Assembly (NCBI GenBank): GCA_964035545.1
Contig: OZ037771.1
Location: 4,165,628-4,229,627, forward strand
Direction of reading: 5' to 3'
Length of the DNA: 64,000 nt
From: Bugula neritina
Taxonomy: Eukaryota; Animalia; Bryozoa
Under the pieces are notes generated by a model, which had not been told where the DNA came from, searched no databases, and saw only the letters and a list, made by a program, of their open reading frames with translations. Shown one piece after another: positions 10,401 to 60,671 of the stretch. The position numbers were made by a program, and so were the translations under genes. Numbering within the stretch: position 1 is the first letter of the stretch; every line of letters begins with the position of its first letter.

Positions 10401-13400
10401 AACTTACTCTTGCAGATGTTTAAGCTGCTTACTGTTTGCAATAATAGCCGAGGAAACAATTTTTAATTATTTCAGTGAGAAACTTAGCAATTGCTTATTT
10501 CAAGTAAACAGCAAAAATAACTAATAATTAAATGGAATATAGTTTGATATAATATTTATAAAATTTATGGCGGTTATTTTTAGGAATATTACTTTCTCAA
10601 GTTGAACAATTAGCACTGTAGGCTGTTTGATTGTTTAAAGGTGTGTTTTAATTTTGTCTGGTCATATTCTCATTTCATATGGAAGAAATAGCAATAATCA
10701 ATTTTGTATGCTTCTATTTTAGAATTATTTCCGTGACGCGTGGAACGCCTTTGACTTCATCACCGTTGTCGGTAGTATAGTGGACATATTCGTCTCTAAC
10801 TACTCTGTGAGTGTGCTGTGATTCTCCAAGAATATGACTTTACTAGTCGTTCTAACTCATATGCACCGTTTGCATGTACTTGACACATTTCTAGACTAAT
10901 CCATACCCATTATCATATACCTATATGTGATGCATGCTAATGTGTATACTTGACTAGCTATAATTCTATTTTTTGTTTCTATTTCCTTTTTTCAGAAATC
11001 TGTGAGTATAAAAAGAATTGAGTTAGCTTTCTATGAAGTGTGTGCACCTTTATGGTTAATTTCCAGCACATTCATAACTTGACTATGTGCACATTATGAG
11101 CATATTTCTCTGTTGTATGTATATGTGACTGTGCGTGTGAGTGTGCGTGTGTGCCCTCGAATGAGTGAGTGAGTGAGTGAATGAGCCAGCGAGCAAGCGA
11201 GTTAGTAATTACGTGAGCGAGCAAGTGAGTGAAGGAGTGAGTGAGTGAGGGAGTGAGTGAGTGAGTGAGCGAGTGAGCAAGCGAGTGAGTAATTACGTGA
11301 GCGAGCAAGTGAGTGAAGGAGTGAGTGAGTGAGTGAGCGAGTGAGTGGGTAAGTGAGCGATCGAGTGAGTGAGTGAGCGAGCGAGCGAGTGAGTGAGTGA
11401 GTGGGTGAGTGAGTGAGTGAGTGAGTGAGTGAGTGAGTGGGTGTATAGACCAGCATGTATATGAATTACGCTCATACTCAGGCAACTATATAGATAATGC
11501 GTAGCTGTTTTCTGTTGTAACACACTCACTTGTGATGAAGTAAAAAAACCGGTTTCTCTTATTTTAATATATTATTTGCTAAAATTTCAACTGACTTCAT
11601 TCCAAGCTCATTAAATATCTTATAATTAAAGTAAATGTCTCTCTCTTCAACAGAATGGAGAAAATAAGAATTTCAATTTGGGATTTCTGAGACTCTTTAG
11701 AGCTGCGAGGCTGATCAAACTACTGAGACAGAGTTACACTATCCGTACACTGCTGTGGACGTTTGTGCAGTCTATAAAGGTGAGTATCACCCGCTTAGTC
11801 TGTAATCAGTTGATGGTATTTAGGCTAAGCGTTTATTTATCTGCCTCTTCCGCCTCTTCATGCCTTCCTTTTCATGGGGTCAAATATGGTGCAAAATTTA
11901 TTCAAGAAAATTTTAGCCCAGACAATTCACATCACCCATTTGTCTTCTATTCAAAAATCTGAACTATTTGAGCTTTCCTTTTTGATTTTCATTCTCAAAA
12001 CTATATGGAGTTCACTCTCTAAACTGCTTGAGTACCACTCTGTAAACTACTTGAGTTTCACTCTCCAAGTTATTTGAGTTGGTGCAAGTTCATTTTGATA
12101 TAACCAAAATGTCAAATAAGTTCAACAATCTATATACAGTTTTCATCATAACATATATTAAGAGAAGGTAAAATTGGTCCAAAATTATCAGATATTACAT
12201 TGTCTAGTATAATTATAAAATCATATTAAATGTATAAAAATTATATTGTACTATATATTATAACTATATCACACTATTTAAATTATATATAATTATTATA
12301 TTATATATAATTATTATATTATATATAATTATTATATTATATATAATTATTCAATCGTTTATGCATATTCATTATTATTATTATATTATATATAATTATT
12401 ATGTTGTATATAATTATTATATTATATATAATTATTATATTATCGATATTATAGATATACCCATTATATTACATAAACAAATATCATTCATTCATCAATT
12501 TTATAAGGAATGTACAGAAACAGTTCTACATTTAATATGCCAAACACAAATGATAAACACACACTATAATGTTAAGCAAATATAGGCTATATGAATTGTG
12601 TTTAATACAATATTGTTAATAGCTGATACTTGTGTAATATTTTTAAGGTGTCTGTACAGATCTTGCACAAAATGAAAGGAAAAACTGTTATGCATTTGTT
12701 TAAGCATTTCAGTCGAATTATCAGCCCAAAACTATAGTTTGTGTAAAAATCTTTTGCGTGATTGAAAATTTACTCTCTGCTTCTTATGATGCCATAATTT
12801 CTTCAATCTCATTTGTAAGGATATTAGTTCATAGCATGTTAAATGTCTGTACAGCTCTCATTCAATGATGAACTGGAACCTGAAATAGTAAATATTGTTG
12901 GTACTAATTACAGATTTTTTTAAGAGTTAAAAAGGGGACTAGTGGAAGAAATTATATGCAATATATATTGAAAGATATTATATAGCTCGTGTATATAAAT
13001 CAAGTATAATTGCCATTTTTTCTGTGTCCCACTCATTCACAGCCCAAATGCTGACTTTATAGCATTGAAAATAAAAGTCAAGTAATTTATTTTTTACTTT
13101 TTTGGTGACATACATTACATTAAACATGAGCTAGTTATCGGTTTCTGATTTAAATAGTCTGATACAGCATACAAACAAACATACACTGGCTTCTCATTCT
13201 TCTCATAGACACATTTAATGAAAAAACACATGAGATATACAAAACCTAGTTTTTCGACTTCATTTAAGGAAAAATCTTCAATACTGTTCCGTCTTACCTC
13301 ATAGGTCTCCTCTGGTTTACCTTGACTTTGTAAATCATCCTGATTCATATACTCCTCTTCATTCGCTTCTGCATACACCTCTTCCTCTCTACTGTCTCTA

Positions 13401-16400
13401 ACGTCTGCTGATGAAAGATGGTTACCATCTTGAGCGCCGTTATTTATATCATCGTACAATGCTTGTTCTGCTTCTTCATAAAAGGCAGAATTCACCTTCC
13501 CACTTCGCTCTTGCACCTCGTCGTAAACCTCTAACTGAGAGTCGACTCGTGGTGCCACCTGTGGGGCATCATTTATGTCCAAGTAGAGTTCTTGATCTTC
13601 CTGTAATAGCAATAGCCCTACAGTGTCATAGCGGGTGGCTATTAGCCTCCCCCTCAGCTGCAGGCATCAGTGTGAGGGGTAGAGAGGCTAGTGTTCAAGT
13701 TCTTCATTATCAATCAAATCGGTTTACTTAGCTGCTATGTTAATTTATTCAATTTTATTTCCTAAAGAGTTGGGAAGTACAAGTATACTTTGTAGTTGTT
13801 AGATGTTGAAGTTAGAATAGAGTTTGTATGTCTTACTGTTTGCTGTGAAAGTGGTTTTCCTTGATTGTTATTGTATGTTGGTGTCTGTTTGTAATTTTCA
13901 TATATCTCCTCATTGGGGTTGCTGGAAAGGGTGATAAAGTATTAGTTTTATTTGCATAACAATTTTACATGTCTGACTGAAGGAATGTATTCTGGTTGTT
14001 TTGCCAACCACCATGTATGAAACAGCATTGTGGGAATAAGCAGTGTAAATGCCAACTGTTTTAATGCAACTCTATAAAGATTTTCTTATAACTCACAACT
14101 GTTGGAAGTATCCACCCCTGTAAGACCCCCTCATTACAATGGTTCATAAGTAGGCTAAGGATTGTGCCTCTTACCATGCTGGCAACATGGTTTGAGGGAT
14201 TTTATTATGCCACAGGAAAAAATAATAGGATATGACGCTCTTCCTGGCATTACCAATAGCCTGGGCTTGAGTTCATGGGTTGCAGGGTTAAAGGGCACAT
14301 ATATCACACTAGGCCTATGCTCTAGTCACTGGGCTACAGGCTAACCATCAGGAGTCTATTAGGTCATTACTGTATAAAACTTTTCTTATGTAGCAGAATA
14401 AAATTTCACCAACTACCATATTCATTATAACTAACATTAACAAGGTTAGCAATATTTTGACTGAAAAACTAAAATATTAGGTAAACAGGGACTGACCTTT
14501 TATCGTTAGAACTGTCCGGTTCTCTCTAAAATACCAAATTTAGTTTAAATAACATGAGATGATAATAATGCAGTTTATATTTAGGAGTTTTCTTCTCTTA
14601 TAGTTTTTAGGCAACTCCTGAATATAAAACAAACTTTGAGCCTTTCTAAAGAATATTTGACTATTTCTAGTTCAATTGAGTGAACACTCAGCAGTTAGTT
14701 GAGTTAGTTAAGTTAGAAATCATTTATTGCAGCATCTTTTGATTTTCTGTCATAGACCCTTTTCAGAGGTCCCCAATGTTCCTCCTTACAATTAAGAGTT
14801 GTGTCCTCCCAAAATGAAATTTGTTGAGTAAAATAGGCTTGAACTCATTTTTGTGGATTTGGTTGCTGAGCAATGCTTAAGTTTCACTTTAGCATTGCTC
14901 AGTAACCAAAACTACATAAATGCTTTCAAGATTATTTTTGTCAAAATTATCCATGAAGAAATATTTTTAAAAATATTTTTGAACTGCTAATATGTGTGCT
15001 TATACGAAAATATCTATTTCCTAAAATTACAATTCTATAGCATAATTAGAATTCTAAGTAGCAGCCAAACTTTAAATTTTTAATGAGTTTACTCTTTATA
15101 TAAAGGTTCAACCTATTCCCTTTGGGAGGACACAACTCTTAATTGTAAAGGGGGTATTAGGGACCTCTGTAAAAGGTCTATTGGTGTTATAAAAGCTATC
15201 AATGAGTACTAAATTATTTCAGTGTGTTTTTATCATTTTGTTTAAACCAAGGAAAATAGTTTGTAAATCTGTTTAAATAACTCACCATTAACAAAGATTA
15301 TCTGCAATTAAACAAAGTATTGTATCCAAGTTTAAAAACATTACCTGCGTAGGTGTGGGCTTATGTTCAGTGTGCCCAGCACCTGTAAGACCGACTTTTT
15401 CTAGCTGACGTGTAGGCTCTAAAGAAACAAATATCTGCAGTTGCAATAGAGAAACAAATATCTGCAGTCACTATAGAGAAACAAATATCTGAATTTACTA
15501 TAGAGAAACGAATATCTGCAGTTACTGTAAAGAAACAAATATCTGCAGTTCCTATAAAAGAGGTAATACTTGCAGTTGTAATAGAGAAACAAATATCTGC
15601 AGTTATTATAGAGAAACAAATATCTATAGACAAACTTATTTCATGGCCTAATGTGGAGATACAGAACAGTTTCAACAAATAAGAAGCAATCTTTCTATCA
15701 AGCAGAGTGCAGGTGCACTAAACTCACTTAGTTCCTTGTTAAGTTAGTTAAGATGAATTTAGAATGTATAGCAAACATACTGAAAGATATCGGCTAAACT
15801 CTAAGCTTATGAAAATATATTCCAATAATGATCATAGGTAGGTTTTTGTTTTGAGTGTTTTGTTAAAACACTGTTTTGTGAAAACACCGTTTTGTTGAAG
15901 TGTGGAATGCAATGGCTGCTAAGAAATACTTCTATTTTTCTTATCTACTTTTCTACGTAAAACAAACAATGTTTATTTGATCACTAGCTAAAAGAATAAA
16001 CTCGATTTGTAAAAACATGCTGCTAAACCCTAAGCCAATCATTTTCAGTAATGAATTAACCTCTAGGGCAACTCACTTCAGAAAATCATTGGCAAAATAA
16101 ATATTAAATTTATTTGAATGGTACAGATGGGCTGGAATATTGCCTAATCCTCAGTAATTTACTCCGGCAGTGATACCCACTGAACTGAAACTATAACCCT
16201 GGAAAGGACATCCGGTAGCTTTATAATGTAACCTCGCGTCCAAAGAGCAGCCATATTGGTGGATTGCTAGTTTCACTTTGAAGTAAGATTTTCGGGCAGT
16301 TTATCACGTGACCTGTTCATATTTTCACGTCAACTGGAGCCTCTTTTCGAGAAGTATTTTAATTTTAACCAGTTCGCCGCCATTATTAAATTTTCAATTG

Positions 16401-19400
16401 TCGTGGTTTGTCACTAATAATAAGCATTACTAACAATGGATACTTCTGAACACACTTATCACGCAGTTTCGAAAAGCCAAAGAACATCAGGATCACAGTT
16501 TTTTGCTTATAATTGCTTCAATTACTCAAATTCAGCGCGTTGATAGCAAAGACTAAGAGAGAAACACTTCATTTCACAGGTTCAGGTTGGGGTTAGTTCG
16601 AGTAATACTAGTACTTCTACTAATAGTAATACTAATACTATTACTAGTAGTAATACTTACACTAATACTAATAGTTATTAGTAATTGTATTCGTATCAAT
16701 TATTATGGTAAAGATGGTTTATGAATATATGGTAATGACTATACTTTTAGTTTGAGTCATAATGATGATCTAAATCTTAATTTATTGTAATTCAAATTGA
16801 CCAACTTTTTATAGCAATTACCCATTTACTTTTGGTCATTTCAATTTGAAGATTTAGCTATAAAACTGAACTACAACTTGAATTAGAGTCTAATTGTAAC
16901 ACTAACGCTATATAAGTATATAATAAAATATAGCCAAAGGCTTAAGTTTTGTTGACAAATAAATGATCCAAGGCAAAGTAGATCTTACACAAAATTGTAC
17001 TAGAAGTTGGCTAGTATTAGAATTTAGCAAAAGCTTTTTTATAAAAACATTATAATATGCAGCAAAAATCAATAGTTTGTATACTAAATTTACTTAGCTT
17101 TAGCTTTAAGTATTCATATATTTTTATTTTAGATTCCCTAACAAAATAAAGGATTTCGGCATGTGTAAGGAATGGTGGCAAGTGTCCAGGCGCTAAGAAG
17201 AACTATCAGAAACTGCAAAACTGTGCAGTAAACATTTCTATCCTCAGCATATTGACACCACTGGCCAAACTGGCAGGTTGCATGAAGGAGCTGTTCCATT
17301 AGCAGAGTTGGTTTCTACTCTATCTAGGCTTTTATTAGGTTCTGAACTATAGTGTAAAATTAGCATTCTTTCAAAGTTGTCCAAAAATTATATTTGTTAT
17401 GCAAGTTACTTTTAAAATTCTTTTTAGAAACCGGTTACATCACAGAATACGAATGTGAGTAAAAATTCTAGCAATGAAGATCTACCAATTTACAACAGTT
17501 TTAACAGCCATAATTAATTAGATTTGAATAATTGTCAAGTCATTTTTAAGAGAGAATTAGTATTTTCTTTTTGTGCAGCATACAGCATAGCAAGTTGAAT
17601 GTTTTTGGAGTACACCTGTGTTTTCTAAAAAGATTAAAAGCTTTTGAATTGTTTTACTGGCTTGATAACTTGAAATTATTAGAATGGTATTTTAGGATCA
17701 TTCTTACAGTGAAGGGGGAGATTGGTGGATACGATATTTTTGGCATTGAAAAGCATGCTATGGAAACTTCTACTGACATTGAGAACCACCACTCTACGTT
17801 ACTCAACCTCATTGTTGAAATATATTATGATTTATTTTAACACAATTTGTCTAAAATAAAAAAACTTGTTTTACATAACGTGAGCTGTCAACAGAGAAAT
17901 AATGAAAATGTTCTTTTTAGGAGTCAATAGTCTTTTTATTTATAGTTTTTATTTATATTACTTACATTATATATCAGGTTTTAAGTGATATCTACTTGCT
18001 TTTGTTGTTTTAAAGTAAAATATTTTTATAACAACTAACCTCATTTCTCTATTCTATAGCCAACAATTATTACCAGCAGCTAAATTTAAGTAGATGTTAT
18101 ATTATATACCAGGTTTTTACTTGATATCAACTTGCTTTTGTTGTTTCAAAAAAGAATATTTTTATAACTACCAGCTTTATTTCTTTATGTTATAGCCAAC
18201 CCTTATTACCAGCAGATAAAAATAGAGTACATTTTGGAATTATTCACTTGTGTAGTGTGATGCCAAAGGTTTTATAAATACTGCAAAATATAGTAATTTC
18301 CATTACTTTTACATTAGAAAGTAGGCGATGTCCAAAAATAAGAATTCTTCAATATGGCTGAATTATTAGGACGTTTAAAATCTACATTGGCCATTCCAGG
18401 GGATTATAGTTCAATGGTGATACCATTTGGAAGTTCTGTAACTAATCATGTGACATCTTATTGACCTCTACTAAAATATGTAATTATATAAATATATTAT
18501 TCTCAATACCTCTGAAGCCAGCTGCAAGTGTGTGTGACTTGTTTCCTTTTTCTGCTGCTTTCCCATTGGCTCCTCCTGCCCCTAGATTAGATATAGTTTA
18601 TTATATTATCATTTCATATGATTTTTTATCTCATGTTCAACAGTAATTCATAATATGATTGTCCTTCACTGTTTAAATAGGGCTACAGAGTTACAGGTTA
18701 GCCCAGTGTTTCACATCTCATCCTGAATGTCTACATATTTTGTGTTTAGATAGTATTTCAGTTCATCACTCAATGACTAATTAGATCTTCATGTAAAGGA
18801 CAGATCTACAAGCTCTATCTAACTTCAATTTCATTGGGTATTACAGTCCATAATGTTAAACTATGACAGCTATTGCTCTGTAGAAATTGTTCCCACCTGT
18901 TGAATTTGGGAGTGTTGATGATTTGCCATGGTTTTCCATTTGTATCACTTCTGGACCTGCATAACACAATATTCAATAGAATTAAATATAACCCTGACAG
19001 AAAAACACTAATTCCTAATGACATAAGGTTATTTAGTGCCTATATACTTTACAGTTTATGTGATATATAACTTATATAACTTAATTATAGTGTTCCTAAA
19101 GTGTTAATATCATTATGTATATAACTTTACAATAAGTAATTCATCACAAATTTTGTTGGGAAAGTCAATAAGATTAATTAACATGAATTTCAAATCCATG
19201 TTATGCCTCAAGTACACTAAGTAAACTACTAGTTGATTTCACCCCACAGTTTATTTTCAAAGTAGAAATAGATAATTTAATTTGCATGTCTAGGGACTGA
19301 AACAAAAACAACGTCACACCAACATAAGTTTATTGAAGCAGATAAATTTAACCTGCAGCAGGGTTTGGACTGTAAACATTTACTGCTGCTGTTTCTTCAA

Positions 19401-22400
19401 TGCTCTTTCCTTTCCATTGCCGTCTCTTTCTAAAATATAAATTAATATAAAATACAGTGTGTATTTTTTAGTATGTATATTTTGCCAAAAATTGTTTGAT
19501 TTTAATAACTGTGCAACTATTAGCACTATACAATATAATATTGTTTTTATATAAAAAAAAGTGTTATATATTATTGACTTGTAATAATTAAATTATTATT
19601 TAAAAACTTGACATTTTCATTGTCAATATAAAAGCAGTATTTTCTTATGGTACTCTAATTTTTTCGTGTCACTTAGGTTCTCTACTTGATAAAATTACTG
19701 TGACTGTCAGTACTATTACAGTAACTGTTGGTGTATTCTTGCAGTAACCATCAGTGTACTACTATTATACTGTCAGTGTACTATTGCAGTAACTGTCAGA
19801 GTAGTGTCCGACTAGCAGTTATTATGTAAATAAGCCATAGAGGGGAAAACTCCAAGCTCACCGCTGGAGCCTACTGCTTAGATCTTCTAATTCTAGACTG
19901 TGTTTAGTATACAACATCTGATTACACTCCAAACCCACAGACATAAACTCAATGTATGAAAGAAAGCAAAGTCACAATTGCCCTTATAAGAACTTCACAT
20001 GCTGTAACATTTGAAAATTTCACGAGGGTAGAAGTTTGCTGACTGACCTACCTCCATAATAAGTACACAAGAACTAGAATAGCTATTACTGCGATGCACA
20101 GGAACACAGCCAGCACAGGTGTGGCTACTCTGAATCCATCATACGCCTTTAAGTTACTGCTGCTCACATGTTGCGAAGTCAGCTGCGCTGTTGTAGGACC
20201 AGGCAGCGTGGTGGCTCCATCTGTGGTGGTTTCCAGGGTAGTAGTAGTTTCTAAGGTGGTAGTGGTTTCTAAGGTGGTAGTGGTTTCTAAGGTGGTAGTG
20301 GTTTCTAAGGTGGTAGTAGTTTCTACAGTAGTGGTGTTGGAGGAGGTGGTGTTGCTCAGAGAGTTGGTGGTGGTTCTTAGAGTGGGCAAAGAGGTGCTGA
20401 GGGATGTTGTGTTCTCTGCCATGTTAAAGCTGGTTAGACACTGTTCATATCCCCTTTGCTGAAGTCAGCTAGTTCTCTCACCTTATCTCCTCAAATCAGA
20501 ATCTATTAGTGGGCCTACAATGAAACAACTGTGACAGGCATATGTATTTGGTATTCTTATCTGCACCAATAGACTCTTGGGTGGAGAATTTCTTATCACA
20601 AAAATAGATACGGGAAGACCACTCACCTCTCAAACCCTGCCGCCAGTCAAACCTGGTTACTAAGGCTATATTACTTTGTCGCTCACACTGCACTTAGTTC
20701 CTCAATAAGATAAACTGATAATGTTGTACAAGCTACTGCCTTCTTGCGACTTCTCACCTGATGCTCTCTTTAGTCAACTATTGTTCAACTTTGTGAAAAC
20801 AAAATAACCTTACATAATGTTTGAATAAAAATATCTCATTTGTTAATGAAGTGAAAAGAAATGCAGTCTTGTGTAAATCTAAGAGGAAGTTGGCTTGTAT
20901 ACTCAATGCGAGTTTGTGAACCGCAATTTTTCAAGTAAGAAAATGATTATGGGTTGAGGCTAGAGTGTGCTGATACAACGCTGTTAGTTGGCTTAAAACT
21001 ATTCTGTGATATTTCTATAATTGTGTTTGCTAACTGTCATAGCAACCATTAGAACGTTATGAAGATGTTATATGGTCTATAGAGTTGTCTCCCTTTAAAT
21101 TTCAAGCTATTTTATGACTAATTGCACAGAAATATATTTGATGAACTCCATTATTTACTTCCAACATCAGATAGTTAAATTTCCATGCTTTTGTATAGTT
21201 TATATATCAACATTTAGCAAAATTCTTTATTATTTTATTAGCATCACTAGTCTGTATATTATATTAACAATAAACAGTATATTGACAATTATATTAACAA
21301 TAAATAGTTGTACATGACATTGTGTTCATGTATACTACTTACTGATATATTACTTAAAACTTCTAAATCAACTCATTTGATTGGCAGAACTGCTTCAAAC
21401 TGGCTGTATTTACACCAGAATTTGGATGCAAATATATAGTATCATCTCTGCCCTTCCCATCTAATGACACTGTCAGTGGCCATATTTAATACTTCCTGTA
21501 CTACAGCAGTTGACACTAAACTTTTATTCTATATACAGTTGCTGTAATGTTTTATGGCCATATTTATGAATTACCGCATATAGGCATTATATTATTCTCG
21601 TTGAAATATCTGTTGGCTTCAAATTTTAAGGTCAAAGTTTTGAGTTATAAATTTCTGAATAGCAACGGTGATCTTTAGCAATAATAAGCAACTAAATTAA
21701 ATTAATTCAAAGCAAGTTGAGTTTTTGTTAATAGGAAATATTTATACATTATTTTTATATTGAAAGATTATCAGCTAAAGGTATCAAAGTGAATTAAACT
21801 TTCAACTGACAAAAGTTATACATAATTTTATACATGGAAAGTCTCAAGTCAAATGTATGGCTCCTGCTTAGTAGAGTCAATATATTTTTGAGAAAAGAAC
21901 CAAATCTTGCTATTAGGTGCCATATTTATACGTTTATACTAGTTTGGAGCGTGGTTGCATGCAGACAACGTTTCATGCTGCAACTAATAGCTAGAACTAA
22001 AGCTATCTAGAGAACACCACACATCTGTTGACAGAACTCTAGTATGCTGTATGACTTTATGATGATAATGTGTTTGTAGGCTCTACCATACGTCTGTCTG
22101 CTCATAGTGATGCTCTTCTTCATATATGCTATCATAGCAATGCAGGTATGTTACCATAGCAATGCAGGTATGCTATCATAGCAATGCAGGTATGCTATCA
22201 TAGCAATGCAGGTATGTTATCATAGCAATGCAGGTGTGTTATCATAGCAATGCAGGTATGTTACCATAGCAATGCAGGTATGTTATCATAGCAATGCAGG
22301 TATGTTATCATAGCAATGCAGGTATGTTATAGCAATGCAGGTATGTTACCATAGCAATGCATGTACGTTATCATAGCAATGCAGGTATGTTATCATAGCA

Positions 22401-25400
22401 ATGCAGGTATGTTATAGCAATGCAGGTATGTTACCATAGCAATGCATGTACGTTATTATAGCAATACAGGTATGTTACCATAGCAATGCAGGTATGTTAT
22501 TATAGCAATGCAGGTACAATATTATAGCAATGCAGGTACTTTATTATAGCAATGCAGGTACTTTATTATAATAATGCAGGTACTTTATTATAGCAATGCA
22601 TGTACGTTATTATAGCAATGCAGGTATGTTATTATAGCAACAATGCAGGTACTTTATTATAGCAATGCATGTACGCTATCATACACACATATTTATAAGC
22701 TGTCTGGATATTCAAATCTGAGTTGAGTAGATCAAAAGGAAGTGTAACCATGGCAACTGTAATTCCAACACAAGTTCGCGAAATTAAATACTAAATGAAA
22801 AGGAGGTTCACAGGTGGAGAAAATTTCAGATATCAAAGTTTGTCAGTTTTGTGGCTCTGGCATTATACAACAGCCAAGCCAGACTTTTCTACTCAAGTAA
22901 CTAAAGCTGCTCAAGTCACTAAAGTTATTCAAGTCGTTGAAGTTGCACAAAACTTCAAAACAAATTTTATTTAAGTTTGCTAATGTAATTGATATCCGCT
23001 TTTATTATTTTCTGATTATGAGGAGATAACTTCTAGGGTGTTAATAGTGTATATTAGAGTTTGTAAACTAAATTAGATTCCATTTACACTGTCGCTATTT
23101 GCAGATATTTGGAAATATCAAGCTTGGAAAAGTGCCAGACTCAGCTATAAATAGACACAATAATTTCCAAAATATATTCAAGTCATTGATACTGCTGTTC
23201 AGGTATATATAATATACTTATATCTGCTTTTTTCTATAATATATAATATACTTATATCTGCAAGTTTCTATAATATATAATATATTTATATCTGCACATT
23301 TCTATTATTATTATTATTATTATATTGTGCTAACAGACACATCTGGTATTTAAATAAAATTCTCAATCCACACAGACCTTTACCATTACCTCCTACTATG
23401 AGCCAGTACATTGTACTCACTTGAATCTATAGTCGCCATCCTTGTGAGAATTCCTACTGAAGGTGGTTTTTTTTCAACAGGCTAAGGGCTTTTTCTCTAT
23501 TGTGAATGCCCTTCCTAACATCACCAATATGTCCTTTACTGGAATATGAACCACTAATCATGTAGGACGTATTTATTATATAATCCCATGCTATGTAATA
23601 TCTTGTAGTAACGTACACACCACACATGTACATATCACACAGTATGGATCAGAAAGTAAGTCATAGTGTGGCATAAGACAGAGTCTTACGTCTGTACACC
23701 AACTTACAAGAGTTCAAGGCCATTAGTGTTGGCTACAAAGGAGTAAGGGTGTGCATTTCCTGTTTTATCTCGTGATTATAATGGAGTTGCTGTTGGATGA
23801 CTCGTAGGTGCTGCACGGGGGAGGCGTGGCAGCTGATAATGTTGGCGTGTTTGGGAGATCAGGACTGTGAGGAGGGATCCCTTCTACCTAACGGGGAATG
23901 CGGCTCCAACTTTGCTTACATCTACTTCACTTCCTTCGTATTTCTCTCTTCCTTCCTTGTGAGTTCAATATATTGTATGGTATACTACATAGTATACAGT
24001 ATAATATATTACATAGTATACAGTATAATGTATTACATAGTATACAGTATAATATATTACATAGTTTGCAGTATAATATATTACATAGTATACAGTATAA
24101 TGTATTACATAATATACAGTATAATATATAATTACATGTATAATATTGCTGTTGTACACCAGTATTACTATCATACACTAAGATACAAATGATAAATAAA
24201 GTTTATATTGTTCAACTGACAATTTAATAATCAATTAAATGAATAGATATCCCTGATGTTGTTTATAAGCTATAATACTGATGAGATTCTATCACTATAA
24301 TATTTATTTATATAATTAAATAATTCAATACATAGTGTAAATGTAAACTGTACGTTGAAGTGTTTGTGTAATGTGTACGTGTAAAGTGTAACACTTTCTG
24401 TATGTGCAGATGCTGAACCTGTTTGTGGCAGTCATTATGGACAACTTTGATTACTTGACTAGAGATGCCTCTATACTCGGGCCCCATCATCTCGATGAGT
24501 TTATTAGGGGCTGGGCGGAGTACGACCCCGCTGCTACGTATGTTAATAAAGTTTCTAATCTATATTTTATTGAGTCAATAAAAACTGAAACGCTTGCACG
24601 ATCTCTAAGGTGTGCATTGTATTTTTGACTAAACAGTGTCATTATGTCATGAAGCCGCTGTTGAAATTTTCTACTTCCTGTATTGTAACTTTGCTATGGT
24701 TGCCATGGTTACAGGTCTCGTATTCACTACACTGACATGTACGAGATGCTGAAGAAAATGGAGCCTCCCGTTGGTTTTGGTAAAAACTGTCCTTACAGAT
24801 TTGCGTACAGAGTAAGTAATATGTCAGAGTAAGGAACAAGTCAGGCACAGTATTAAAATTTTTTTAGTAGTCTTAGTTCTTTAATTATTTGACCAATTTT
24901 GGTTTGGGGTCGGTTGAAATTCTTGTGAGAACATAACTTCTTTTGCTAAGTTTCTTACTTAGAACACATGCTTTTCTCAATTTCTCCATTACTGTACCTA
25001 CAACCTCTAATTATATGGGAATATTTGGTTATTGTGTTTAACTTGCATTACAGAAGTTGATCAGGATGAACATCCCAGTTAGTAAAAACCTTACAGTACA
25101 TTTCAGGACTACTTTATTTGCCCTCATCAGGGAAACTCTTCACATACAGTGTGGACCAGGTATGAATTCTTTAATTTGCTTAATAAATTTTGGTTTAAGA
25201 CGCAGGTTGAAATTCCCGCAAGAACTTAATTTCTTTTGCTTTATTTCTAATCTAGAACACAGGCTTTTCTCAATACCTCCGTTGCTGCACTTACTTTAGA
25301 ATTGCTTTTTGAAAGACTCGCTATCTTTTCCAAGTGTATAAATTGTTGCTTGTTCATGTTTAAAGCTGAAAAATAATTAAATGGCAAGCTAAAAATTTGT

Positions 25401-39200: not shown

Positions 39201-40896
39201 ACCGCCAGGTAAAGAACATGTAACTAATAGGTGACTAGTAGGTGACCACCAGGTAAAGAACAGGTAACTAGTAAGTGACTAGTAGGTGACCAACAGGTAC
39301 CTAGTAGGTAAGCAAGTGATCTAGGGAACTATAAGTTGGCAGGTTTGTAAATAAGCTATATGTTCAAGCAGTAAAAGTTTGTACAACTGCTGGAGAAAGT
39401 TATAATGGAATAAACAAGCATTAATTTGTTGCGACACAAAAACATCGCTACTCCATGTACTGTAAATATGGCCATCTATAATTAGAATCAGACTGTCACT
39501 ATTAAAGCCAACATCCATCATATAACAAATAAACAGAGGGCAATTTTAATGGATGGTTAAACAACAAGTAAACCTGTCAACACCAAACCCCAGTTACACA
39601 TTGATGTGTGTCACCTCCCAAGGCTATAGTAATGGCCTGACCAGTATTCAACTGCAAAGTTGTTTACCGAGTTGCAGTGAATAATAGCAAGGTTAGTTGA
39701 ACGCTGGCCAAGAATCATCTCTTGGCAACTGAGTTAAGTAGTCCAACTGAGTAGTAGTAGATTATTCAACACGACCCTACCAACAGGTATAGCCACAACT
39801 GACTATGGTTATTAATATGCATTACTCTTCCTACATTCACATAATACTGTTCACGTAATACTACCCTAACGTGGAGATTTGTACACTGCAGGGAGAATTA
39901 GCTGTGTCTTCTACTCACTAGATTAGTACAAAGGGCCACGTGGCCAGCTACTGCTACAGAGTACACCAATTGACCAGGAAATGAGCACACAACAATGGCT
40001 CTCAATAGCAATTACTAGTAACCAGGAGTCTGTTTTGAGATAAATAAAAGAGTAATAATACTGTAGTGAGTAGTGAGGCTATGCACCAGCTGATAGAGTG
40101 GTTGTGAGCTGAGGGGGGAGGGGGTGATGCAATGCTGCTGCAACTGATACAGCTAACCGGCCACTTGAACACTTACTATAAACATGGTCTTCTAATCAAT
40201 GTGTGAATCACACCCTCACCAGACACTATTTGAACTCTATTGTAAACAACAAACAACTAGCCATACCAATGTACTCTAGACTGCTCCTTACACAGAGCAA
40301 CAAAGCCAATGCCTCTGCCAGTGTGTCCCCCCCCCCCCCCCCATGTATCCAACACTGGGAAGTTTGTCTCCCAGTGTATCCACCACTGGAAAGGTACATA
40401 CATACATGTGCGTCTTATCTCACTACAGCTGTAAACATCACAGTCGCACAACTTACTGGAGTTGCACTTCTCGTTAGAAGATGAAACGTCGGGTGCAGGG
40501 GAAGAGCTGGAAGCAAAGTCTAATCTCTTGACTGTTTGTGGACACGGAGTCACTTTTATTGTCTCGGGATAGCCCTTCTCCTTGTCGGAGGGTCGGGGTG
40601 GTGTGCGAGGGTATCTCACTATAGGCTTGAAGTGGCGGTTGTATTCACCAGTGATTGAGTCTATGCTACTACTTCGCCTGGGAAGCTGTAACTTAGTACT
40701 CTGTAACAATATAAGTAGTAGTGGTAGTATTAGTATTAGTATTAGTAGTAGTAGTGGTAGTATTAGTAGTAGTAATAGTAGTAGTAATAGTAGTAGTACT
40801 AGTAGTAGTGGTAGTAGTAGCAGTAGTACTGGTAGTAGTAGTAGTAGTAGCAGTAGTACTGGTAGTAGTAGTAGTAGTACTGGTAGTAGTAGTACC

Positions 40897-40961
<65 letters not shown>

Positions 40962-41057
40962 CAGTAGTAGCGGTAGTAGTAGTAGTAGTAGCAGCAGTAG
41001 TAGTAGTAGTAGTAGTAGTAGTAGAAGTAGTAGTAGTAATAGCAGTAGTAATAGTAA

Positions 41058-41099
<42 letters not shown>

Positions 41100-41188
41100 A
41101 GTAGTAGTAGTAGAAGTAGTAGTAGTAATAGCAGTAGTAATAGTAATAGTAGTAGTAGTAGTAGTAGTAGTAGAAGTTGTAGTAGTAA

Positions 41189-41226
<38 letters not shown>

Positions 41227-44200
41227 ATAGTAGTAGTAGTAGTAGTAATAGTAGTACTGGTAGTAACACCCACTTACCTGGTTAATATTATTATGACTGG
41301 GTTTATTCTCCTACAACAAAAATAGAATCTGGAATAAACTTCATAAAAACTATGTAATGATAGTTTGAATCATTCCTGGAATATAAAAAACAGAGAGACT
41401 GAGGCCAATATTATCTGAGGATTACAGATATGCACAGGCCGCCGTGAAATCAACAGTCATAATTAATATTATTTCACTTCAGCCCGCTTTGGCTCACTGC
41501 CAACTACTATAATGGCTTCTATACGGTTGTTGGATGATACGTTGTGTTGGCCGGCGAAAGATACCCTGGATATATTAGCCTCGTGTTCCTAATCGATGAT
41601 ATAATCAATAAGGGAGCCACTCGCCGGCCGCTCGCATCGGCAAGCAGAATAGAAATAGCCAACTGCACCGAAGATACACTGTAACGCGCAGTTGATAATG
41701 CTAAAGGTAGTTCAGCTTGCCAATCCTACATAACAGCACCGATGCTGCCAGCTGACCTTGTTAGCAACTTTGAATGCAGCCAGCTCTCTCTTGTCTTTAG
41801 CCAACATTTCCTTGATGAGCTTTTCTGAAGCCTGTTCTTCTTTTTCTCTCTCTTCTCTTAACTACAACACATCATGGTGTAAATTCCAGTAAATTCTGTG
41901 AGTCATGTAGGAGTTTCCAGTTGCTAGTAGAGTAGACACTGAATAGGACATGGCGTGATCCATACAGACTACCAACTCATGTGAACAATAATAATACACA
42001 TACGCAATACTCTGAACTCAGTGGGTCCAACACGCCCTCCCAATAGCCCTAGAGTTTTCAGGACCCCCTACTACGCTTTATTATAACCAATGAACAAGTT
42101 ATAGTTGGAATTACATATTAATCATATACACAGCCAGTAACTAGACTAAGATCTATATTATTCAGAAGTACAGCTGGTAGCACTAGAGCCCCTGTACTAG
42201 AGTGATATGACGTGGTTATGTTGCTACAGCCAACCATTTCTGTTCAGAAAGGGGAAACATTATTATTTAATCCTACCACACTGGGCATCAACTACACGAT
42301 TTAGAAGGCAAGCAGCATGGGGACACAGGATTGGTGTTATAGCTATACATATATAGGACTGCTAAGATGGTTCTATAATCAATTGGGAGTGATTTAGTGC
42401 TGTAGTTAGGGGTTCTCCAGTTTGGAGTTATATCCCCAACTCCAAACTGGAGAACCTTAAGCTACTGCACTCAGTCACCCACAAATTGAAGCTGCTTACA
42501 GAACAATTCAGACTGCTAAGTGTAAAACACCCACCAACCACCTCATTTTATACATCATACCAACTTCACCTGTTCTACAGACCACCTGGTTATTTGCTTC
42601 AGCAGCAAATCTCATAGCTTGCTGCTACCAACTGTGTGCAAACTATCTACCACTTCATTCATCTCAATGGCAATCATAACAGGTAAAAAACCAAATAGTG
42701 AAACGAGTTTGACAGGATAAAAGAAGTTTGTTTTACAAAACCTTTAGTATTGATTAAAAGGTGAAAGACAAAGCCGGTTAGTGAAAGCACACTACACTGT
42801 CAGTGACACTTTGAATTAGCATATGCTGAATACATGATAGCACTTTGGACACTGAATACGGTGCTGATACTTTAAATACTCACTTTTTGTAACTCTAATT
42901 CATACTCTTTTCTTATTTCTCCAGTATTGGCCAACACCACTGAGAAGGATTCCCTCATTGCTAACAAAAAAAGCTCAATTATAATATACACATAACTTAC
43001 AGGTATACACAGTTTCAATATAACACAAGTCACCACCCAGTTGAGAGAAAAGTAGAAGTAATTTGAATACTTGGTGGTAACACACGTACTGAGAGTATAA
43101 GATGATCTACTATTAACAAGTCTAAACTTGCCCAGCCCGCCTGGCCCAGATAAAATATACAAATGAATAGAAGATGTATTGCGTTCGATTGAGTCATTAC
43201 GCACGCACATTGGGAATGCCAGTATATAGTAAGAGTAGTAGTAGGAAATGAGGGTACGTGATTGGCTGGTCACGTACTACACCTAAGTACGCGGCTGATA
43301 TACAGCATGCCGGGTGTGCATTGCCAGTTGAGCATAGGGTAATAAAATACCCGTAATGATGGTGCAATAGTTGCCAGGTAACACAGGGGCACTGCACCAC
43401 CTACCTCTGCCAACACCCAATAACTCATTCCAATTGTTTCCATAACCTAAGATGAACTAGAATTTTGTGAGATGAAAGTTACTACTATTTGAAATAGATT
43501 CAATTTCAAAAACCAGACAACTTGTATGAAATCAACTGTAATTACACAAACCAAGTGATAAATATGACTTTGAAATGCTGTATTAAAACTGAAACTGTGA
43601 TGCTGCTAGACTTTACCAGATGAAGGCAGCACTAGTATTTGAAACATATTCAACTGGCAATATTACGCAGCTCTAGCTTTTAAATTAGTTAAAATAAATC
43701 TTTAAAAAATAAAATCAATTAACTCAAGTTTTCAGGCTGGTTTCTGCCATGAATACAAAAAACAAAACCGTCAGTCCAGATTGAGATAGACTAGATCACT
43801 AGAATCATGTAATGGTTATAATAACTAAAAGATTTGAACTCCCGGACAACTTGCACCTTGCACGAAATAAAAACATCTGAATTCGAATAATTTGCTACTT
43901 TGCCAAAAATAACTTGTTATATTTAAGCATTACAAAGTAACATCTTAAAGGTTTTCGAGGCAGAGAAAATCATATCAAGCTATGACAGAGTGTGGAGTGA
44001 GGCCATAAGACACACCCTAAAACCAGCATGTTATGACATAAACCTTAACTTACGACATTGTAAACATTACAATTGCATAGAAACTCATTAGCCCAACCAT
44101 TACTATATATATTATATTAAGAAACTATAATAATAATATAATGCAAATGGACATAATATAGTAAATTTTTATACATACAAGAAATAACATTTTTATCAGT

Positions 44201-46347
44201 TATGCTAATAATCGGATCAACTTATGCAGAATGGAGTAGATCATTTAGGAATTCTAAGTCAGTTTATCCACGGTACTGCTAGTGTGCCGGGCATGTACGA
44301 CTTGTTTGTATTGTATAAAGTTGAAGGATAAACTTTTGATTCAATACTTTGGCAACAAAAGTGAGTTAGGAGTTTTCAGTTATTATTGCAGTTTTTGGAC
44401 ATTTTAGTTTAGTTACATTGTGAAATCTATTTGGACAGTTTAATGTCAAATAAATAAATAAATAAATTATATCTGTACATCTCAAGATCCCTTATAATAC
44501 AGTAACTTTTAGTCCATAGTTGACAAATTACAGGTTCAACTTTCAGTTTTTATAGCTGAGAACATTTGAGGTGTACAAACTCCAACCGAGGTACAGATTC
44601 AAACTGACTGGGGCAATTGTGAATAATAACCATCAGCAGTGTATCAAATTCTTAGAGCATGTTTGAGTTAGACACTACTAATTTTAATAGGCATTTACAC
44701 TCTTAGCCAATCCAAAATCTAACAATAAAATGGTGAGTAAGCAAGATTTATATTAGCTCTTTAGTAAAATAAATATAATAATATTAAATAGATTGATAAT
44801 ATTGATATTTATTTTACCAAAGTGGAAGTAAAAATCAAAAGACAATAGTCAAAATACTTATAACTGCATACTGATACACAAAAATATATGAAATACTATA
44901 CACATATTGATATAGTAACTGATAGTCATACCTATAACAAATGTGATACTTATACTGATAGTGATAGTCATACTCATACTGATAGTGATAGTTATACTCA
45001 TACTGATAGTGATAACTTATACTTATACTGATACCAAGATACAGAGTGAGAGTGAGTCAGGTGTTATGCCAGACATTATAGCAAATGTAGTACTAGTACC
45101 TATACGCTATACCACTACATCCACAGTGATTACTAATAGCAGTAAGTACAGTTATTATATTTATATTAATATGAATATCCATGGCAATAGAAAAATTAAT
45201 TTTTATCACTCATGAATATACTATATAGGTTACACCTGTAGTTGTATAGTAATACTTATAGTTATAGAATATAGACTTAAGTTGATGTTAAATATGGATA
45301 TGTAGTTGTAGATGTACTTACTAATACTAATACTAATACTTATACTTATAGTTATACTCATAGACTTATTTATAGTTATAGTATTACTATTAGTATAACT
45401 ATAGATAAGTATTAAGTATTAGTATAACTAGCACTATCAGTATCAGTATGATTATGAGTAGTACTAAACAGTAAATGAGTAAATAACATTAACATTATTA
45501 TTATCATTATGATAATGAATATGATCAAGTGATCAAGTTCAGCATTGCCATTAGTAAGACTAATACTAATAGTAATACTAATACAGTATAACTATAAGTA
45601 TAAGTATTAGTATTACTCGTACTCATGTCTCATAGTCATACTGTCATAGTAATGGTAACACTAACACTGATACTGATAGTGATACTGATAATCGTATTGA
45701 TACTGATACTCTAACAGTAACTCATACTGATACTTAGTCTTAGAGGTTAGAGTTAATGCTAGTCACTGTCAGTTACTGTTTTAGTGTTCAACTTTATGTT
45801 ACTTTGTTAGTATTACATTTAGATTTAGTGATTCACTGATTTAGTTTTATTATTAATATTACATTTAGTTTTACTATTACTATTAGTAGTATTACTTTTA
45901 CTATTAGTATTACTATTAGTAGTATTACTTTTACTATTAGTATTACTATTAGTATTAGAGTATTAGTATTACTATTAGTATTACTATTACTCTATTAGTA
46001 TTAGTATTACTATTACTATTAGTATGAGTATTAGTCTTACCTTGGCCTTCCCTCCTACTCCTTTTAGGCGTAGCTTTTCCACTCAAGCGAGCATTCACTT
46101 CCTCAGTAAAATTGGCTTTCATATATTCCCACTTTTCTTTATTGACTAATGTTCCTTTTCGAGCATGAAGACGTGCCCAGCTACCAATTCGACGTCTGCA
46201 GAAGGGGCATTGCAAATTGGCAGTTGTGATGATGGAATCAAAACAAGGTTTACATAAACAGTGATCACAGGGTAATATCACCGGTTCAACGAACACAGCC
46301 ATGCACACTTGGCAATGTGATTGTGATTTTGAATCTGCCATCAGCAT
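36239..46347 (-). CDS. RNF168: RING E3 ubiquitin ligase, RNF168/RNF169 family
   Basis: Exons on the minus strand: 46347-46041, 42960-42884, 41861-41757, 41310-41278, 40700-40457, 38673-38526, 37630-37538, 37413-37321, 36993-36823, 36580-36513, 36393-36239, all phase-consistent. Motifs: RING CQVC..EPVILPCDHCLCKPC..CPFCRRRIGSWAR, LRM1/UMI-like GEIRKEYE..ASEKLIKEMLA, and C-terminal MIU2-LRM2-like DELYAKKLQ..RFEGSGNEYNTR. Confidence 0.9.
36997..37190. repeat. 15/21-bp tandem repeat (GTATTGTGTGCTAGAGTA) abutting an RNF168 acceptor
   Basis: About 10 copies, ending at the 3' splice site of exon 36993-36823. Confidence 0.9.
40712..41265. repeat. (AGT)n microsatellite filling almost a whole RNF168 intron
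   Basis: About 550 bp of the 577-bp intron 40701-41277. It gives rise to the poly-L/S/V/Y ORFs. Confidence 0.97.
42368..42510. mobile_element. Short palindromic MITE, copy 1
   Basis: Hairpin GGTTCTCCAGTTTGGAGTT-loop-AACTCCAAACTGGAGAACC with extended arms. A second copy lies at 55215. Confidence 0.8.
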
Positions 46348-57591: not shown

Positions 57592-59174
57592 CTGAAACGC
57601 AAGCAAAAAAATTATTAATTAGTAAAATTGATTTTAAAATAAATATTGCCAGCATTAAAGTATTAACTTAAAAAACAGTTCTTTAGGTTTATTTGACCAA
57701 TTTGTTTTAAAAAACTAGGCACTATTTAAATTGTGATTAGAAGTTGTCCTCCCATTAGAATATGAAGCTCGCGCATAAAGGGTGTAGCAAAACATGTCAA
57801 GTTGTGGGCGATGTGGTTTACCATAACGATAGCGCACTGTCGGCATAAACTCAGTCAGTGTGTTAGTCAGTGATTAAAATATGCCTTGTTGTAAAGAAAC
57901 AATTCCTTAATGTTAACTCAATTAATCATATATAATCTTATACTTTATTTCCCATTCATACTTTAAACACCTTTTAATTCCTCCGAACTTGCAGTTCTGG
58001 CTTCGATACGAACAAATGAAGAAGGAAGTGCCCCATTGCACCCAAAGTTGCGCGTATCGAGTATTATTTTAGCAAAGTATTTCACGCTGTGATGTTATAA
58101 AGTGAAGGGATTCCCTGTGTGTAACTGTGATAATTATAACATTGAAACTTAGTGCATTTCACTTGCGTTTGCACTAGTTGAACCCGTTGCAGGTTCATCA
58201 AGCGAATTGATGTGCAGCAGTTAAGAAATGTAGCTATCTCGTGTGCTAATATTTTGTTGGTGCTTTAACTCATTCATGAGGGTACATTAGGTTCTAACCA
58301 GTGCTCAATCTAAAATAATGGGGGGCTTAGAGTTGGACTCCCTAACTAAATCTTGGCGTATGAGTTTATGAGGTAAATAAACACGGATCTGAGCTGATTT
58401 ATTAAATGAGTTTGCACTAAAATACCTGCTGCCTTTGCAGCAATGCCACAGGCTAGGTCACTCAGTATCAAACCCAACACGATTAATTCTTGCCAAGGGT
58501 TCTATCAATGATAATTAAAAAACAAAAGACACAAGTAAGGCCTAATCTTCATTAATATGTCATAACATTAAGAAAGTAGTTTTGTAATTGTAACTAATAA
58601 CAATGAATTAAAATGGAAAGTTTTATTTTGCAAGAAATGTCAGTCCACAACTAATCAATGCAAGTGCAAAGTTTAGATGTACCAGAGGTTAAGTATAGAG
58701 GAGCTATTTTTGCACTAGTTTGCACTCCCAGCTGCACCAAATAAACTCAGATATAGAGATACAAATTTAATAACTAGTAAGTATAATTAAGCCGTAGTAG
58801 TTGAATGCTTTAATTAGATATATGTCGAAAATATTTTCAATTTTAGGAAATTTCTCAGCCAGTTTAGTTGAAGCTATTGGAGAAATTGAGAAAAGCCTGT
58901 GTTCTAGACTGAAAATATAGCAAAAGAAATGGTGCTTTGAATTTATTAAGAAAATTAAAGAGCTTGCGCTATTGGAATTTCTCTCCTACCGCACCTAAAT
59001 GATTAAGCTACAGTTCTCAAAGCTGAACTAAAAAAACTAGCAAATCTAGGGCCATTCAAAAAGAAAGCAATAAGCCACATGGAGATTTTAAATGACTATT
59101 TGTAGTGAGAAAGGGAGAAAAAGTTATGATTGTGTAATATAAACTTTTCTTAATTATTGGATAGCCATCACAGC

Positions 59175-59289
59175 ATAGCAGCAGTATTACTAGTAGTACG
59201 AGAAGTAATAGTAGTAGCAGCGGCAGTAGTACTAATAGTAGTAGCAGTAAAAGTATAAGTAATAGTTGTTGCTGTAGTATTAATAGTAT

Positions 59290-59321
<32 letters not shown>

Positions 59322-59367
59322 GTAGTAGTAGCAGTAGTATTAGTAGTAGTAGTAGTAGTAGTAGTAG

Positions 59368-59456
<89 letters not shown>

Positions 59457-59493
59457 ATAGCAGCAGCAATAGTAGTAGTAGTAGTAGTAGTAT
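59175..59493. repeat. (AGT)n microsatellite
   Basis: Read directly. It is the source of the poly-L and poly-T ORFs. Confidence 0.97.
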
Positions 59494-60671
59494 CAAGATG
59501 TAGCAATGTCTATATGTTTCATTCATAAAACCTCTTTGCATTTTGCCATGCTACTTAGTTATGTGATGGACCTTGATAATAATTACAAAAACATTCATGC
59601 AGCAGCACAATGAAATCCTATACAAGGCATATACATACATATGTAGGAGTTGTTTTGCCTGAGTTCAAATCTTCCAACACCGTTATGCATTAAATATTTG
59701 AGACCAAAACCTGCCAGATGCATTTTCTCAGCTTTAAAAGAGTTAAAATACATATCTGCATTCGTGAAAATCCATTGTAAAAATAAATCATTATTCAAAC
59801 TGTTCAAGTTGCATACATAATAGCAATTTTATCACGGTTTTTACCAATTATATATTCTTAATGTGCAGTTAATTTTGGGGGACAGGATGTGCGCATGACG
59901 AATGGGTTCGATTCAGGCTCAAGTTTACTACTTTCCCCTTGAAGTCCGCCACGTCAGACACGTCTGCACTTTGAACGTGACTCATCCCTACTAACTTACT
60001 GGCTGCGTTAGAGAGACAGCCGTGGGAACTGAATGCCAGTAAAGGGGAAGGAACGAAGCAAGAATTATGTAATCACTTATAATGTTGACAAGGCCTATCT
60101 TTCACAGGCTGGTGAAGTTCATTAACCATGCATTTGTCACGCAAAATATGCCAAAGTTGGTTAGTATTAATTTTATATCATGATACATTTAAAAGCATCA
60201 TTCATTCGTGTTTACTTGTATGCTACAATCAAATGAATGATGGCAAAGTAATTAGCTATGCTGATTTATATAGTTCCGAAATATTTAAGTATTTGTTGGC
60301 AATGCCTGCCTATTATATGTCTCATGAACTTGCAGACGAACTGTCTTAATGCCAAACTCATTTTCTGAGACATGAAAATATTTCAAACCTGGCACGTGGG
60401 GATGGGGTAATTGTAATTGACCCCAACCCTGCTGGCACGTGGGGTTTTGGAATTGCAGTTACTGCACACTCAGCATTACAAGGGAAATGTTTGAATAGTT
60501 AGTAGTAGGTTTAGTTATTCACATTTCATTCTACACATAGTTGCAAATAATATTTGCTAGATATTGTAAAACAATTCGAGTTTGAAAATCAGCTAGCAAA
60601 AAGAATTAAGAAATAAAAAACAATTGTGTAACTAAACAGTATAATTATCCAAGTGTTGAATATAAGAAACT

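Follow-up and report, generated by a model that had tools for sequence, protein, structure and literature searches.

A tyrosine-rich membrane protein predicted from a nested antisense gene in a bryozoan Cav2 intron

To our knowledge, transmembrane phosphotyrosine adaptors are known almost only from vertebrate immune cells. These transmembrane adaptor proteins (TRAPs) combine a single transmembrane (TM) segment with a tail of tyrosine motifs and have no enzymatic domain; their ectodomains comprise 4–16 residues with no ligand-binding potential, and one of them, NTAL, was found by searching for YxN motifs together with a TM segment (PMC3342071). TRAPs are a class by design, because they are mutually without sequence homology. 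Outside this class, the tail of nephrin carries the motif YDEV twice, and recruitment to clustered nephrin is Nck-dependent (PMC3237483). Here we analyse a stretch of 64,000 nucleotides (nt) from a genome deposited as Bugula neritina (Bryozoa; assembly GCA_964035545.1, contig OZ037771.1, positions 4,165,628 to 4,229,627 of the forward strand), referred to below as the window and numbered from its first letter. The intron between the S4 and S5 exons of domain IV of a Cav2 channel gene in this window very probably harbours a real, single-copy, protein-coding gene on the opposite strand, and the predicted product of that gene resembles the TRAPs in design.

Like the TRAPs LAT, NTAL/LAB, PAG/Cbp and LAX, the predicted protein has no signal peptide and one TM helix in a predicted N-out orientation, followed by a long tail, predicted to be cytoplasmic, that has neither an enzymatic nor a folded domain and in which about ten tyrosines occur in acidic contexts and several form YxN motifs. 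It shares the lack of a CxxC motif with LAX. Unlike the TRAPs, it belongs to a bryozoan rather than to vertebrate leukocytes. The sialomucins (MUC1, CD43, CD164, PSGL-1 and EVI2A/EVI2B) also have a variable Thr/Ser-repeat stalk and a single TM helix; the tail of MUC1 has several phosphorylatable tyrosines, including a YxN site for Grb2, and the gene for EVI2A, also a small membrane protein, sits antisense within an intron of NF1. In contrast to the sialomucins, the Bugula protein lacks a signal peptide and a SEA domain, its stalk is tiny (5–6 repeats), and its tail is much longer and more acidic. With the nephrin tail, and also with the Nck-recruiting motifs of Tir of enteropathogenic Escherichia coli and of vaccinia A36, it has in common a YDEV in an acidic context and a disordered, membrane-tethered tail with many tyrosines, and it may share the sort of multivalency by which Nck/N-WASP actin assembly is driven. 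Unlike nephrin, it contains a single YDEV, has no Ig/FnIII ectodomain and shows no homology. Glycophorin C is similar in having a glycosylated N-terminal ectodomain, translocated with no cleavable signal peptide, and one TM helix after it; its tail, however, is short, basic and 4.1/p55-binding rather than acidic and Tyr-rich, and there is no homology to it.

Gene model and evidence for coding

The exon model was verified by script on the minus strand of 12800–20900, and all exons below lie on that strand. Exon 1 (20052..20422, 371 nt) opens with an ATG at 20422, encodes the Thr-rich ectodomain and the TM helix, and ends in the split codon AG/A; its ATG and donor are identical in the B. neritina orthologue described below. 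Exon 2 (19353..19429, 77 nt) provides the stop-transfer cluster RKRR/QWKGK and the tyrosine of NVYS. It occurs in no deposited gene model, and its length and AG/GT sites are preserved in B. neritina. By sequence reading, exon 2 is required, because skipping it runs the frame into a stop in exon 5; alternative splicing of this exon was rejected, since skipping and use of an internal GTAAAT donor both lead to stops. Exon 3 (18897..18956, 60 nt) contains the internal ATG at which a deposited B. neritina protein, P0009, begins, and exons 4 (18510..18581, 72 nt) and 5 (15345..15418, 74 nt) are in phase, conserved and included in P0009. The same is true of exon 5b (14497..14525, 29 nt, REPDSSNDK), which is in phase with conserved AG/GT sites and present in P0009, while exon 5c (13837..13921, 85 nt), with the tyrosines of EEIYENY and TPTYNN, is conserved and found both in P0009 and in a second deposited protein, P0002. 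Exon 6 (13298..13600, 303 nt, 101 residues) encodes acidic tail with seven tyrosines, in the motifs ELYLDI, EVYDEV, AFYEEA, ALYDDI, EVYAEA, EEYMNQ and ETYE, and differs from B. neritina by 25 mismatches and no indels. The coding part of exon 7 (12862..12879) adds VPVHH and the stop and completes ETYEVP, across a junction that P0002 and P0009 share. Two ATTAAA poly(A)-like signals (12531..12606, minus strand), 255 and 325 nt past the stop, are pattern matches to a putative 3′ end.

The preliminary description of this DNA had proposed seven exons and had remarked that the list of open reading frames (ORFs) shows the gene as two pieces only (20048–20422 and 13115–13612), as it does. Those seven exons join in phase with AG/GT at every junction, giving 975 nt, or 324 residues plus a stop. 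The exons are present in the sequence, and the model is probably incomplete: it missed exons 5b and 5c, which lie between its exons 5 and 6 and add 114 nt in frame, 38 residues and three tyrosines, for a total of 362 residues. The likely product is this 362-residue form from nine coding exons, which is favoured because the deposited model P0009 contains both additional exons. Leaving out 5b and 5c does not disturb the frame, and the resulting 324-residue form may be an isoform.

A 27-nt array of 7.5 acceptor-like units (polypyrimidine plus AG; 15423–15625, minus strand) abuts exon 5 on its upstream side, and the exon 5 acceptor is the last of these units. Splicing at the copies that end at 15471, 15498 and 15525 would lengthen the exon by 52, 79 and 106 nt, respectively, with a frameshift into a stop. 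B. neritina has this array too (VXIV02000188.1, 13150–13431, 9.7 copies).

Conservation was assessed against that contig (VXIV02000188.1, here L004, of assembly GCA_010799875.2), which holds the whole orthologous locus and whose introns are ~85% identical to those of the window; the ~15% divergence suggests that the window comes from a Bugula lineage closely related to, yet distinct from, that of L004. All nine exon lengths are kept apart from an in-frame change of 36 nt in a repeat, as are 16 of 16 splice dinucleotides. Across 3,644 nt of aligned intron there are 57 indel events (15.6/kb), 79% of them not multiples of 3; at this rate ~13 frameshifting indels would be expected in the 1,089 nt of exon, where there are none (P about 1.4e-6). 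The ratio of nonsynonymous to synonymous substitution rates (dN/dS) is 0.39 for the tail, compared to 0.54–0.89 in the off-frames, and 0.28 for exons 5c to 7, compared to 1.3–1.4, although dN/dS alone is a weak measure because intronic pseudo-frames can reach 0.38. The retained exon lengths, splice sites and frame bear out the antisense coding gene that had been proposed. The opposite view, in which there is no functional gene and the ORFs and splice-like sites are chance or a gene-prediction artefact in the Cav2 intron, can point to the long ORFs that low-complexity Thr-coding repeats yield on both strands, and to deposited models that are fragments without untranslated regions. We consider it very improbable given the missing frameshifts, the preserved splice dinucleotides and exon lengths, an open frame of 183 codons around exon 6 in DNA of ~31% GC, a GC content of 0.35–0.53 in exons against 0.27–0.39 in introns, and the 18 of 35 differences that fall at third codon positions.

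Predicted topology, the tyrosine tail and its possible function

The ectodomain comprises 98 residues, of which 41% are Thr and 51 are Ser or Thr, with three NTT sequons for N-glycosylation at residues 4, 24 and 29. Within it, an 18-nt unit repeated 5.6 times (20226..20325, minus strand) encodes LETTTT, a variable, mucin-like repeat; B. neritina has at the same place a different unit (15 nt, 3.3 copies), with a net difference of 36 nt, in frame, and the length of the repeat varies also between B. neritina alleles. Residues 99–123 (20054..20128, minus strand) form the TM helix, with a 19-residue Kyte–Doolittle maximum of 3.31 at residues 103–121 and no other segment above 0.26; AlphaFold2 (AF2) places a helix at 91–122 with a predicted local distance difference test score (pLDDT) of 89–97. 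The flanks of the helix carry charges of +1 on the N-terminal side and +4 on the C-terminal side, and RKRR follows the helix directly, its first Arg being encoded across the junction of exons 1 and 2. The Thr-rich N-terminus, three sequons, single TM helix and RKRR of the preliminary description are thus all present in the sequence; that account had also seen no obvious signal peptide, and the N-terminal 30 residues are indeed not hydrophobic. From the flank charges, the single hydrophobic helix and the AF2 helix we infer an N-out, C-in signal anchor (type III). A type II topology with sulfated tyrosines outside the cell was rejected on account of the +4 charge after the helix and the sequons on the N-terminal side. 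Reading back from the ATG, the first in-frame stop is met after 15 codons, and the in-frame upstream ORF was rejected as a signal-peptide exon and is taken to be noncoding because B. neritina has an additional stop there.

The tail of the nine-exon product consists of 239 residues with a net charge of –20, no Cys and 11 Tyr. It is predicted to be disordered: AF2 applied to P0009 gave a mean pLDDT of 52 and a predicted TM-score (pTM) of 0.15, and the pLDDT of the ESM Atlas model was 0.41. All eight tyrosine motifs that had been listed for it are found, with ETYE/VP spanning the last junction, and when their conservation was checked, as had been suggested, 11 of 11 tail tyrosines proved to be kept in B. 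neritina. Only five of 35 tail substitutions lie within three residues of a Tyr, a zone that takes up 72 of the 239 positions (Fisher p=0.03), which marks the tyrosines out as the portion of the tail that is conserved best. Acidic residues are enriched at three residues or fewer from Tyr relative to shuffled sequences (p=0.002). The tail contains three YxN motifs, one YDEV and one YxxP, and EEIYE and YEEA resemble the optimal Src substrate and Src SH2 motifs. At least 46 matches to SH2-domain exons occur in the animal's own genome. The immunoreceptor tyrosine-based activation and inhibition motifs (ITAM and ITIM) and hemITAM were considered from the motif list and rejected, as the spacing and the –2 residues are unsuitable.

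We tentatively read the product as a membrane-anchored phosphotyrosine docking scaffold, a function that seems quite possible though short of probable. The hydrophobic helix and the RKRRQWKGK that follows would act as an N-out, type III signal anchor, leaving the 98-residue Thr/Ser repeat region outside the cell as a short, O-glycosylated stalk with its three N-glycosylation sequons, and the acidic, disordered tail of 239 residues facing the cytosol. Kinases of Src, Syk or Abl type would phosphorylate the tail tyrosines, most of which are in E-hydrophobic-Y-acidic contexts, and the multivalent tail would then recruit SH2 proteins: of Nck/Dock type at YDEV and YEVP, of Grb2/Drk type at YENY, YNN and YMN, and of Src type at YEEA. 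The protein would serve in this way as a docking scaffold at the membrane, much as LAT/LAX or the tails of nephrin and MUC1 do.

Several observations weigh against this reading or against parts of the model beneath it. Unlike the TRAPs, with their 4–16 residues, the protein has a 98-residue Thr-repeat ectodomain with three sequons, and unlike LAT, NTAL and PAG it has no juxtamembrane CxxC, its sole Cys lying in the middle of the TM helix. It has neither a cluster of proline-rich SH3 sites nor ITAM/ITIM spacing. The ectodomain evolves fast (dN/dS ~0.8–1.8), the pseudo-frames of introns go down to a dN/dS of 0.38, and conservation of Tyr motifs and splice sites is weak evidence because the lineage compared is only ~15% diverged. 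At the N-terminus, type III translocation of 98 residues without a signal peptide is possible, but this is a long stretch for it; the one acceptor that might receive a further exon on the 5′ side is weak, purine-rich and 33 nt ahead of the ATG; and the link from exon 1 through exon 2 to exon 3 is absent from every deposited model. The assignments of motifs to SH2 domains are pattern matches, and YLDI, YDEV and YDDI match the YxxPhi sorting or LC3-interacting region (LIR) consensus equally well.

That double match is where a different function enters, in which the tail would work in trafficking independently of phosphorylation, through YxxPhi motifs and acidic clusters bound by adaptor protein (AP) complexes, or through LIR-like [Y]xx[ILV] motifs bound by Atg8. 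On this view the product would be, like CD164/endolyn, a sialomucin that cycles or is endolysosomal, and not a signalling scaffold, and the three motifs, which fit both YxxPhi and an acidic LIR core, the mucin-like ectodomain with its fast-evolving repeat, and the tail charge of –20 would all be in keeping with such a role. However, eight of the 11 conserved tyrosines misfit YxxPhi (YEEA, YAEA, YMNQ, YEVP, YENY, YKQT, YNNN and YSPN), the protein contains no dileucine motif, and known sorting tails are short and carry one or two motifs. We regard a trafficking role as unlikely, albeit with some claim to attention.

The pattern of constraint could alternatively reflect a real, lineage-specific gene with a mainly extracellular role, encoding a small glycocalyx, anti-adhesive or settlement-related mucin whose tail is a loosely constrained acidic spacer. 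The conservation of its tyrosines would reflect the closeness of the species: at ~9% exon divergence, by our own estimate, it would be no great surprise if 11 Tyr were retained by chance. The weak constraint on tail (0.39) and ectodomain (0.8–1.8), the turnover of the repeat unit between species and the lack of a homologue outside Bugula in the collections searched all fit a mucin of this kind. A mere spacer would not be expected, though, to show substitutions that avoid the neighbourhood of Tyr (p=0.03), an acidic context around Tyr that is non-random (p=0.002), a Tyr content of ~4.6%, which is high for a disordered acidic region, or a length 2.4 times that of the ectodomain. A mainly extracellular role therefore appears improbable to us.

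Host gene, orthologous locus and search for relatives

The host intron spans ~11786 to ~22079, and the nested gene lies wholly within this one intron. On its low side the intron is bounded by the exon for domain IV S4 (11678..11785, plus strand; Ion_trans positions 95–127, E=2.9e-5) and on its high side by the exon for domain IV S5 (22080..22146, ends approximate, plus strand; ALPYV...IIAMQ). Plus-strand ORFs of the window match the Pfam families Ion_trans and GPHH. The host is assigned to Cav2 because, among PDB structures, its ORFs match the alpha-1 subunits of N-, P/Q- and R-type best, with L-type ranking lower; with Ion_trans exons flanking the nested gene, the location in a Cav2 intron given at the outset stands. 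A search with exon 6 found one copy of the nested gene and no paralogue in the animal's own 216-Mb genome, and Rfam and tRNA scans of the host intron returned no match.

The 3′ end of the IVS5 exon of Cav2 is itself repeated, together with its GT donor, in a 22-nt tandem array of 25.5 copies (22125–22683, plus strand), the unit being ...ATAGCAATGCAG followed at the splice site by GTATGT. As 22 cannot be divided by 3, splicing at most of the downstream donor copies would cause a frameshift. The array also occurs in B. neritina (L004, 8052–8259), in fewer copies. Elsewhere in the window, a 130-residue ORF (45955–46347, minus strand) clearly encodes a RING finger of C3HC4 type (Pfam zf-C3HC4_3, E=4.5e-9); it probably represents one exon of a different gene, for an E3 ligase, that follows Cav2 on its downstream side. 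Long trinucleotide-type microsatellites at 40257–41325 and 59056–59541 produce spurious ORFs of 160–340 residues on both strands (poly-Leu, poly-Thr, poly-Ser and poly-Val), which are not genes.

Word searches led to the orthologous locus. The exon 6 ORF matched P0002, the B. neritina hypothetical protein EB796_001723 (90% identity), and P0001, an ORF from Logan, and the TM region matched EB796_001684, EB796_001741 and P0008. The contigs behind these matches have the same nesting, with the gene on the opposite strand between Ion_trans exons. In the draft assembly GCA_010799875.2, all or part of the locus appears on each of three contigs (L002, VXIV02000192.1; L004, VXIV02000188.1; L005, VXIV02000198.1), apparently uncollapsed haplotigs; these account for the duplicate fragment models, in which EB796_001684 pairs with EB796_001741 and EB796_001685 with EB796_001723. 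Two stretches of the window, 16171–18431 in the intron between exons 4 and 5 and 14748–15177 in that between exons 5 and 5b, have no counterpart at the B. neritina locus and are probably lineage-specific insertions. A contig from a JGI metagenome (3300002729, here L006) was rejected as a third lineage; it is 99% identical to L004 and represents the same species. At 629–1018 of this contig, the TM-coding part of exon 1 has a 1-nt indel, so that the called ORF P0010 departs from the frame once past ...VFLCV; either a null allele or faulty assembly could explain the indel. The length of the Thr repeat in this contig also differs from that in L004.

AUGUSTUS, guided by hints from a published transcriptome (PMC7576161), produced the B. 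neritina annotation. It divided the gene into two models, terminating EB796_001684 in the first intron; the other part, EB796_001685 (P0009, 207 residues), corresponds exactly to exon 3 from its internal ATG, exons 4, 5, 5b, 5c, 6 and 7, and this independent model speaks for the gene being real. The preliminary description had called the gene hidden and undescribed, which holds for the full model. It does not hold for the locus, which is not unknown because GenBank already carries fragments of it for B. neritina as hypothetical proteins (EB796_001684 and EB796_001685, with the haplotig copies EB796_001741 and EB796_001723). What is new is the full gene model and the functional hypothesis.

Relatives were sought with the separate exons, with P0009 (exons 3 to 7 of B. 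neritina) standing in for the joined tail; the joined strings of 324 and 362 residues were built for residue counting only. A phmmer search of 1.84 billion cluster representatives with exon 6 found two Bugula proteins and no relative outside Bugula. Three further phmmer hits (P0003, P0004 and P0005), namely a bacterial repeat adhesin-like protein of 3,072 residues, a TPR-repeat protein and a low-complexity repeat protein, were rejected, their scores being sums of 5–8 repeated stretches. When exon 6, the TM region and the 207-residue tail served as queries in word searches, every match was to Bugula. In the ESM Atlas there was no feature match, and the structural matches, all with TM-scores below 0.3 and obtained on the model of pLDDT 0.41, are meaningless. 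No Pfam domain scored above threshold in the window exons or in P0008 and P0009. Among the matches below threshold, PF05399 (EVI2A; 17.4 bits for exon 1 and 15.8 for B. neritina P0008, cutoff 25) was dismissed as compositional, reflecting a Thr-rich stretch plus a TM helix; PF25639 (DUF7943; 15.8 bits for exon 6, cutoff 27) was dismissed along with it, the longer orthologous tail of P0009 giving no match, as were matches to RIFIN and LMP2. The searches run showed no similarity to any vertebrate protein, and the Pfam families of TRAPs were never among the matches; we do not regard the protein as a member by descent of the TRAP, MUC1 or nephrin families. The gene had been called an orphan, and the phmmer, word, Pfam and Atlas searches, with no relative outside Bugula, agree. 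Within the collections searched it thus seems restricted to Bugula, a status that is provisional because these collections hold few bryozoans.

Implications for Bugula and for transmembrane adaptors

For the B. neritina entries in GenBank, the model implies a correction: two or three fragment models are one nine-exon gene. The locus also illustrates cleanly how a conserved antisense gene can be nested in an intron of Cav2. Adaptor function is offered as a plausible, annotated hypothesis drawn from motif resemblance, and not as a discovery. In a more specific version, which we hold to be doubtful, the protein would be a multivalent phosphotyrosine scaffold of LAT/nephrin type that evolved within Bugula on a variable mucin stalk, convergently with the TRAPs, and would serve as a shared subunit for tail-less, lineage-specific receptors, for example in immune, colony-recognition or larval-settlement signalling. 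If the adaptor reading is true, this would be the first transmembrane adaptor of such design described in a lophotrochozoan, and if the design is indeed the same, it would mean that disordered sequence repeatedly gives rise to this signalling solution. For a phylum in which functional data are almost absent, a bryozoan adaptor would also offer a way into tyrosine-kinase signalling.

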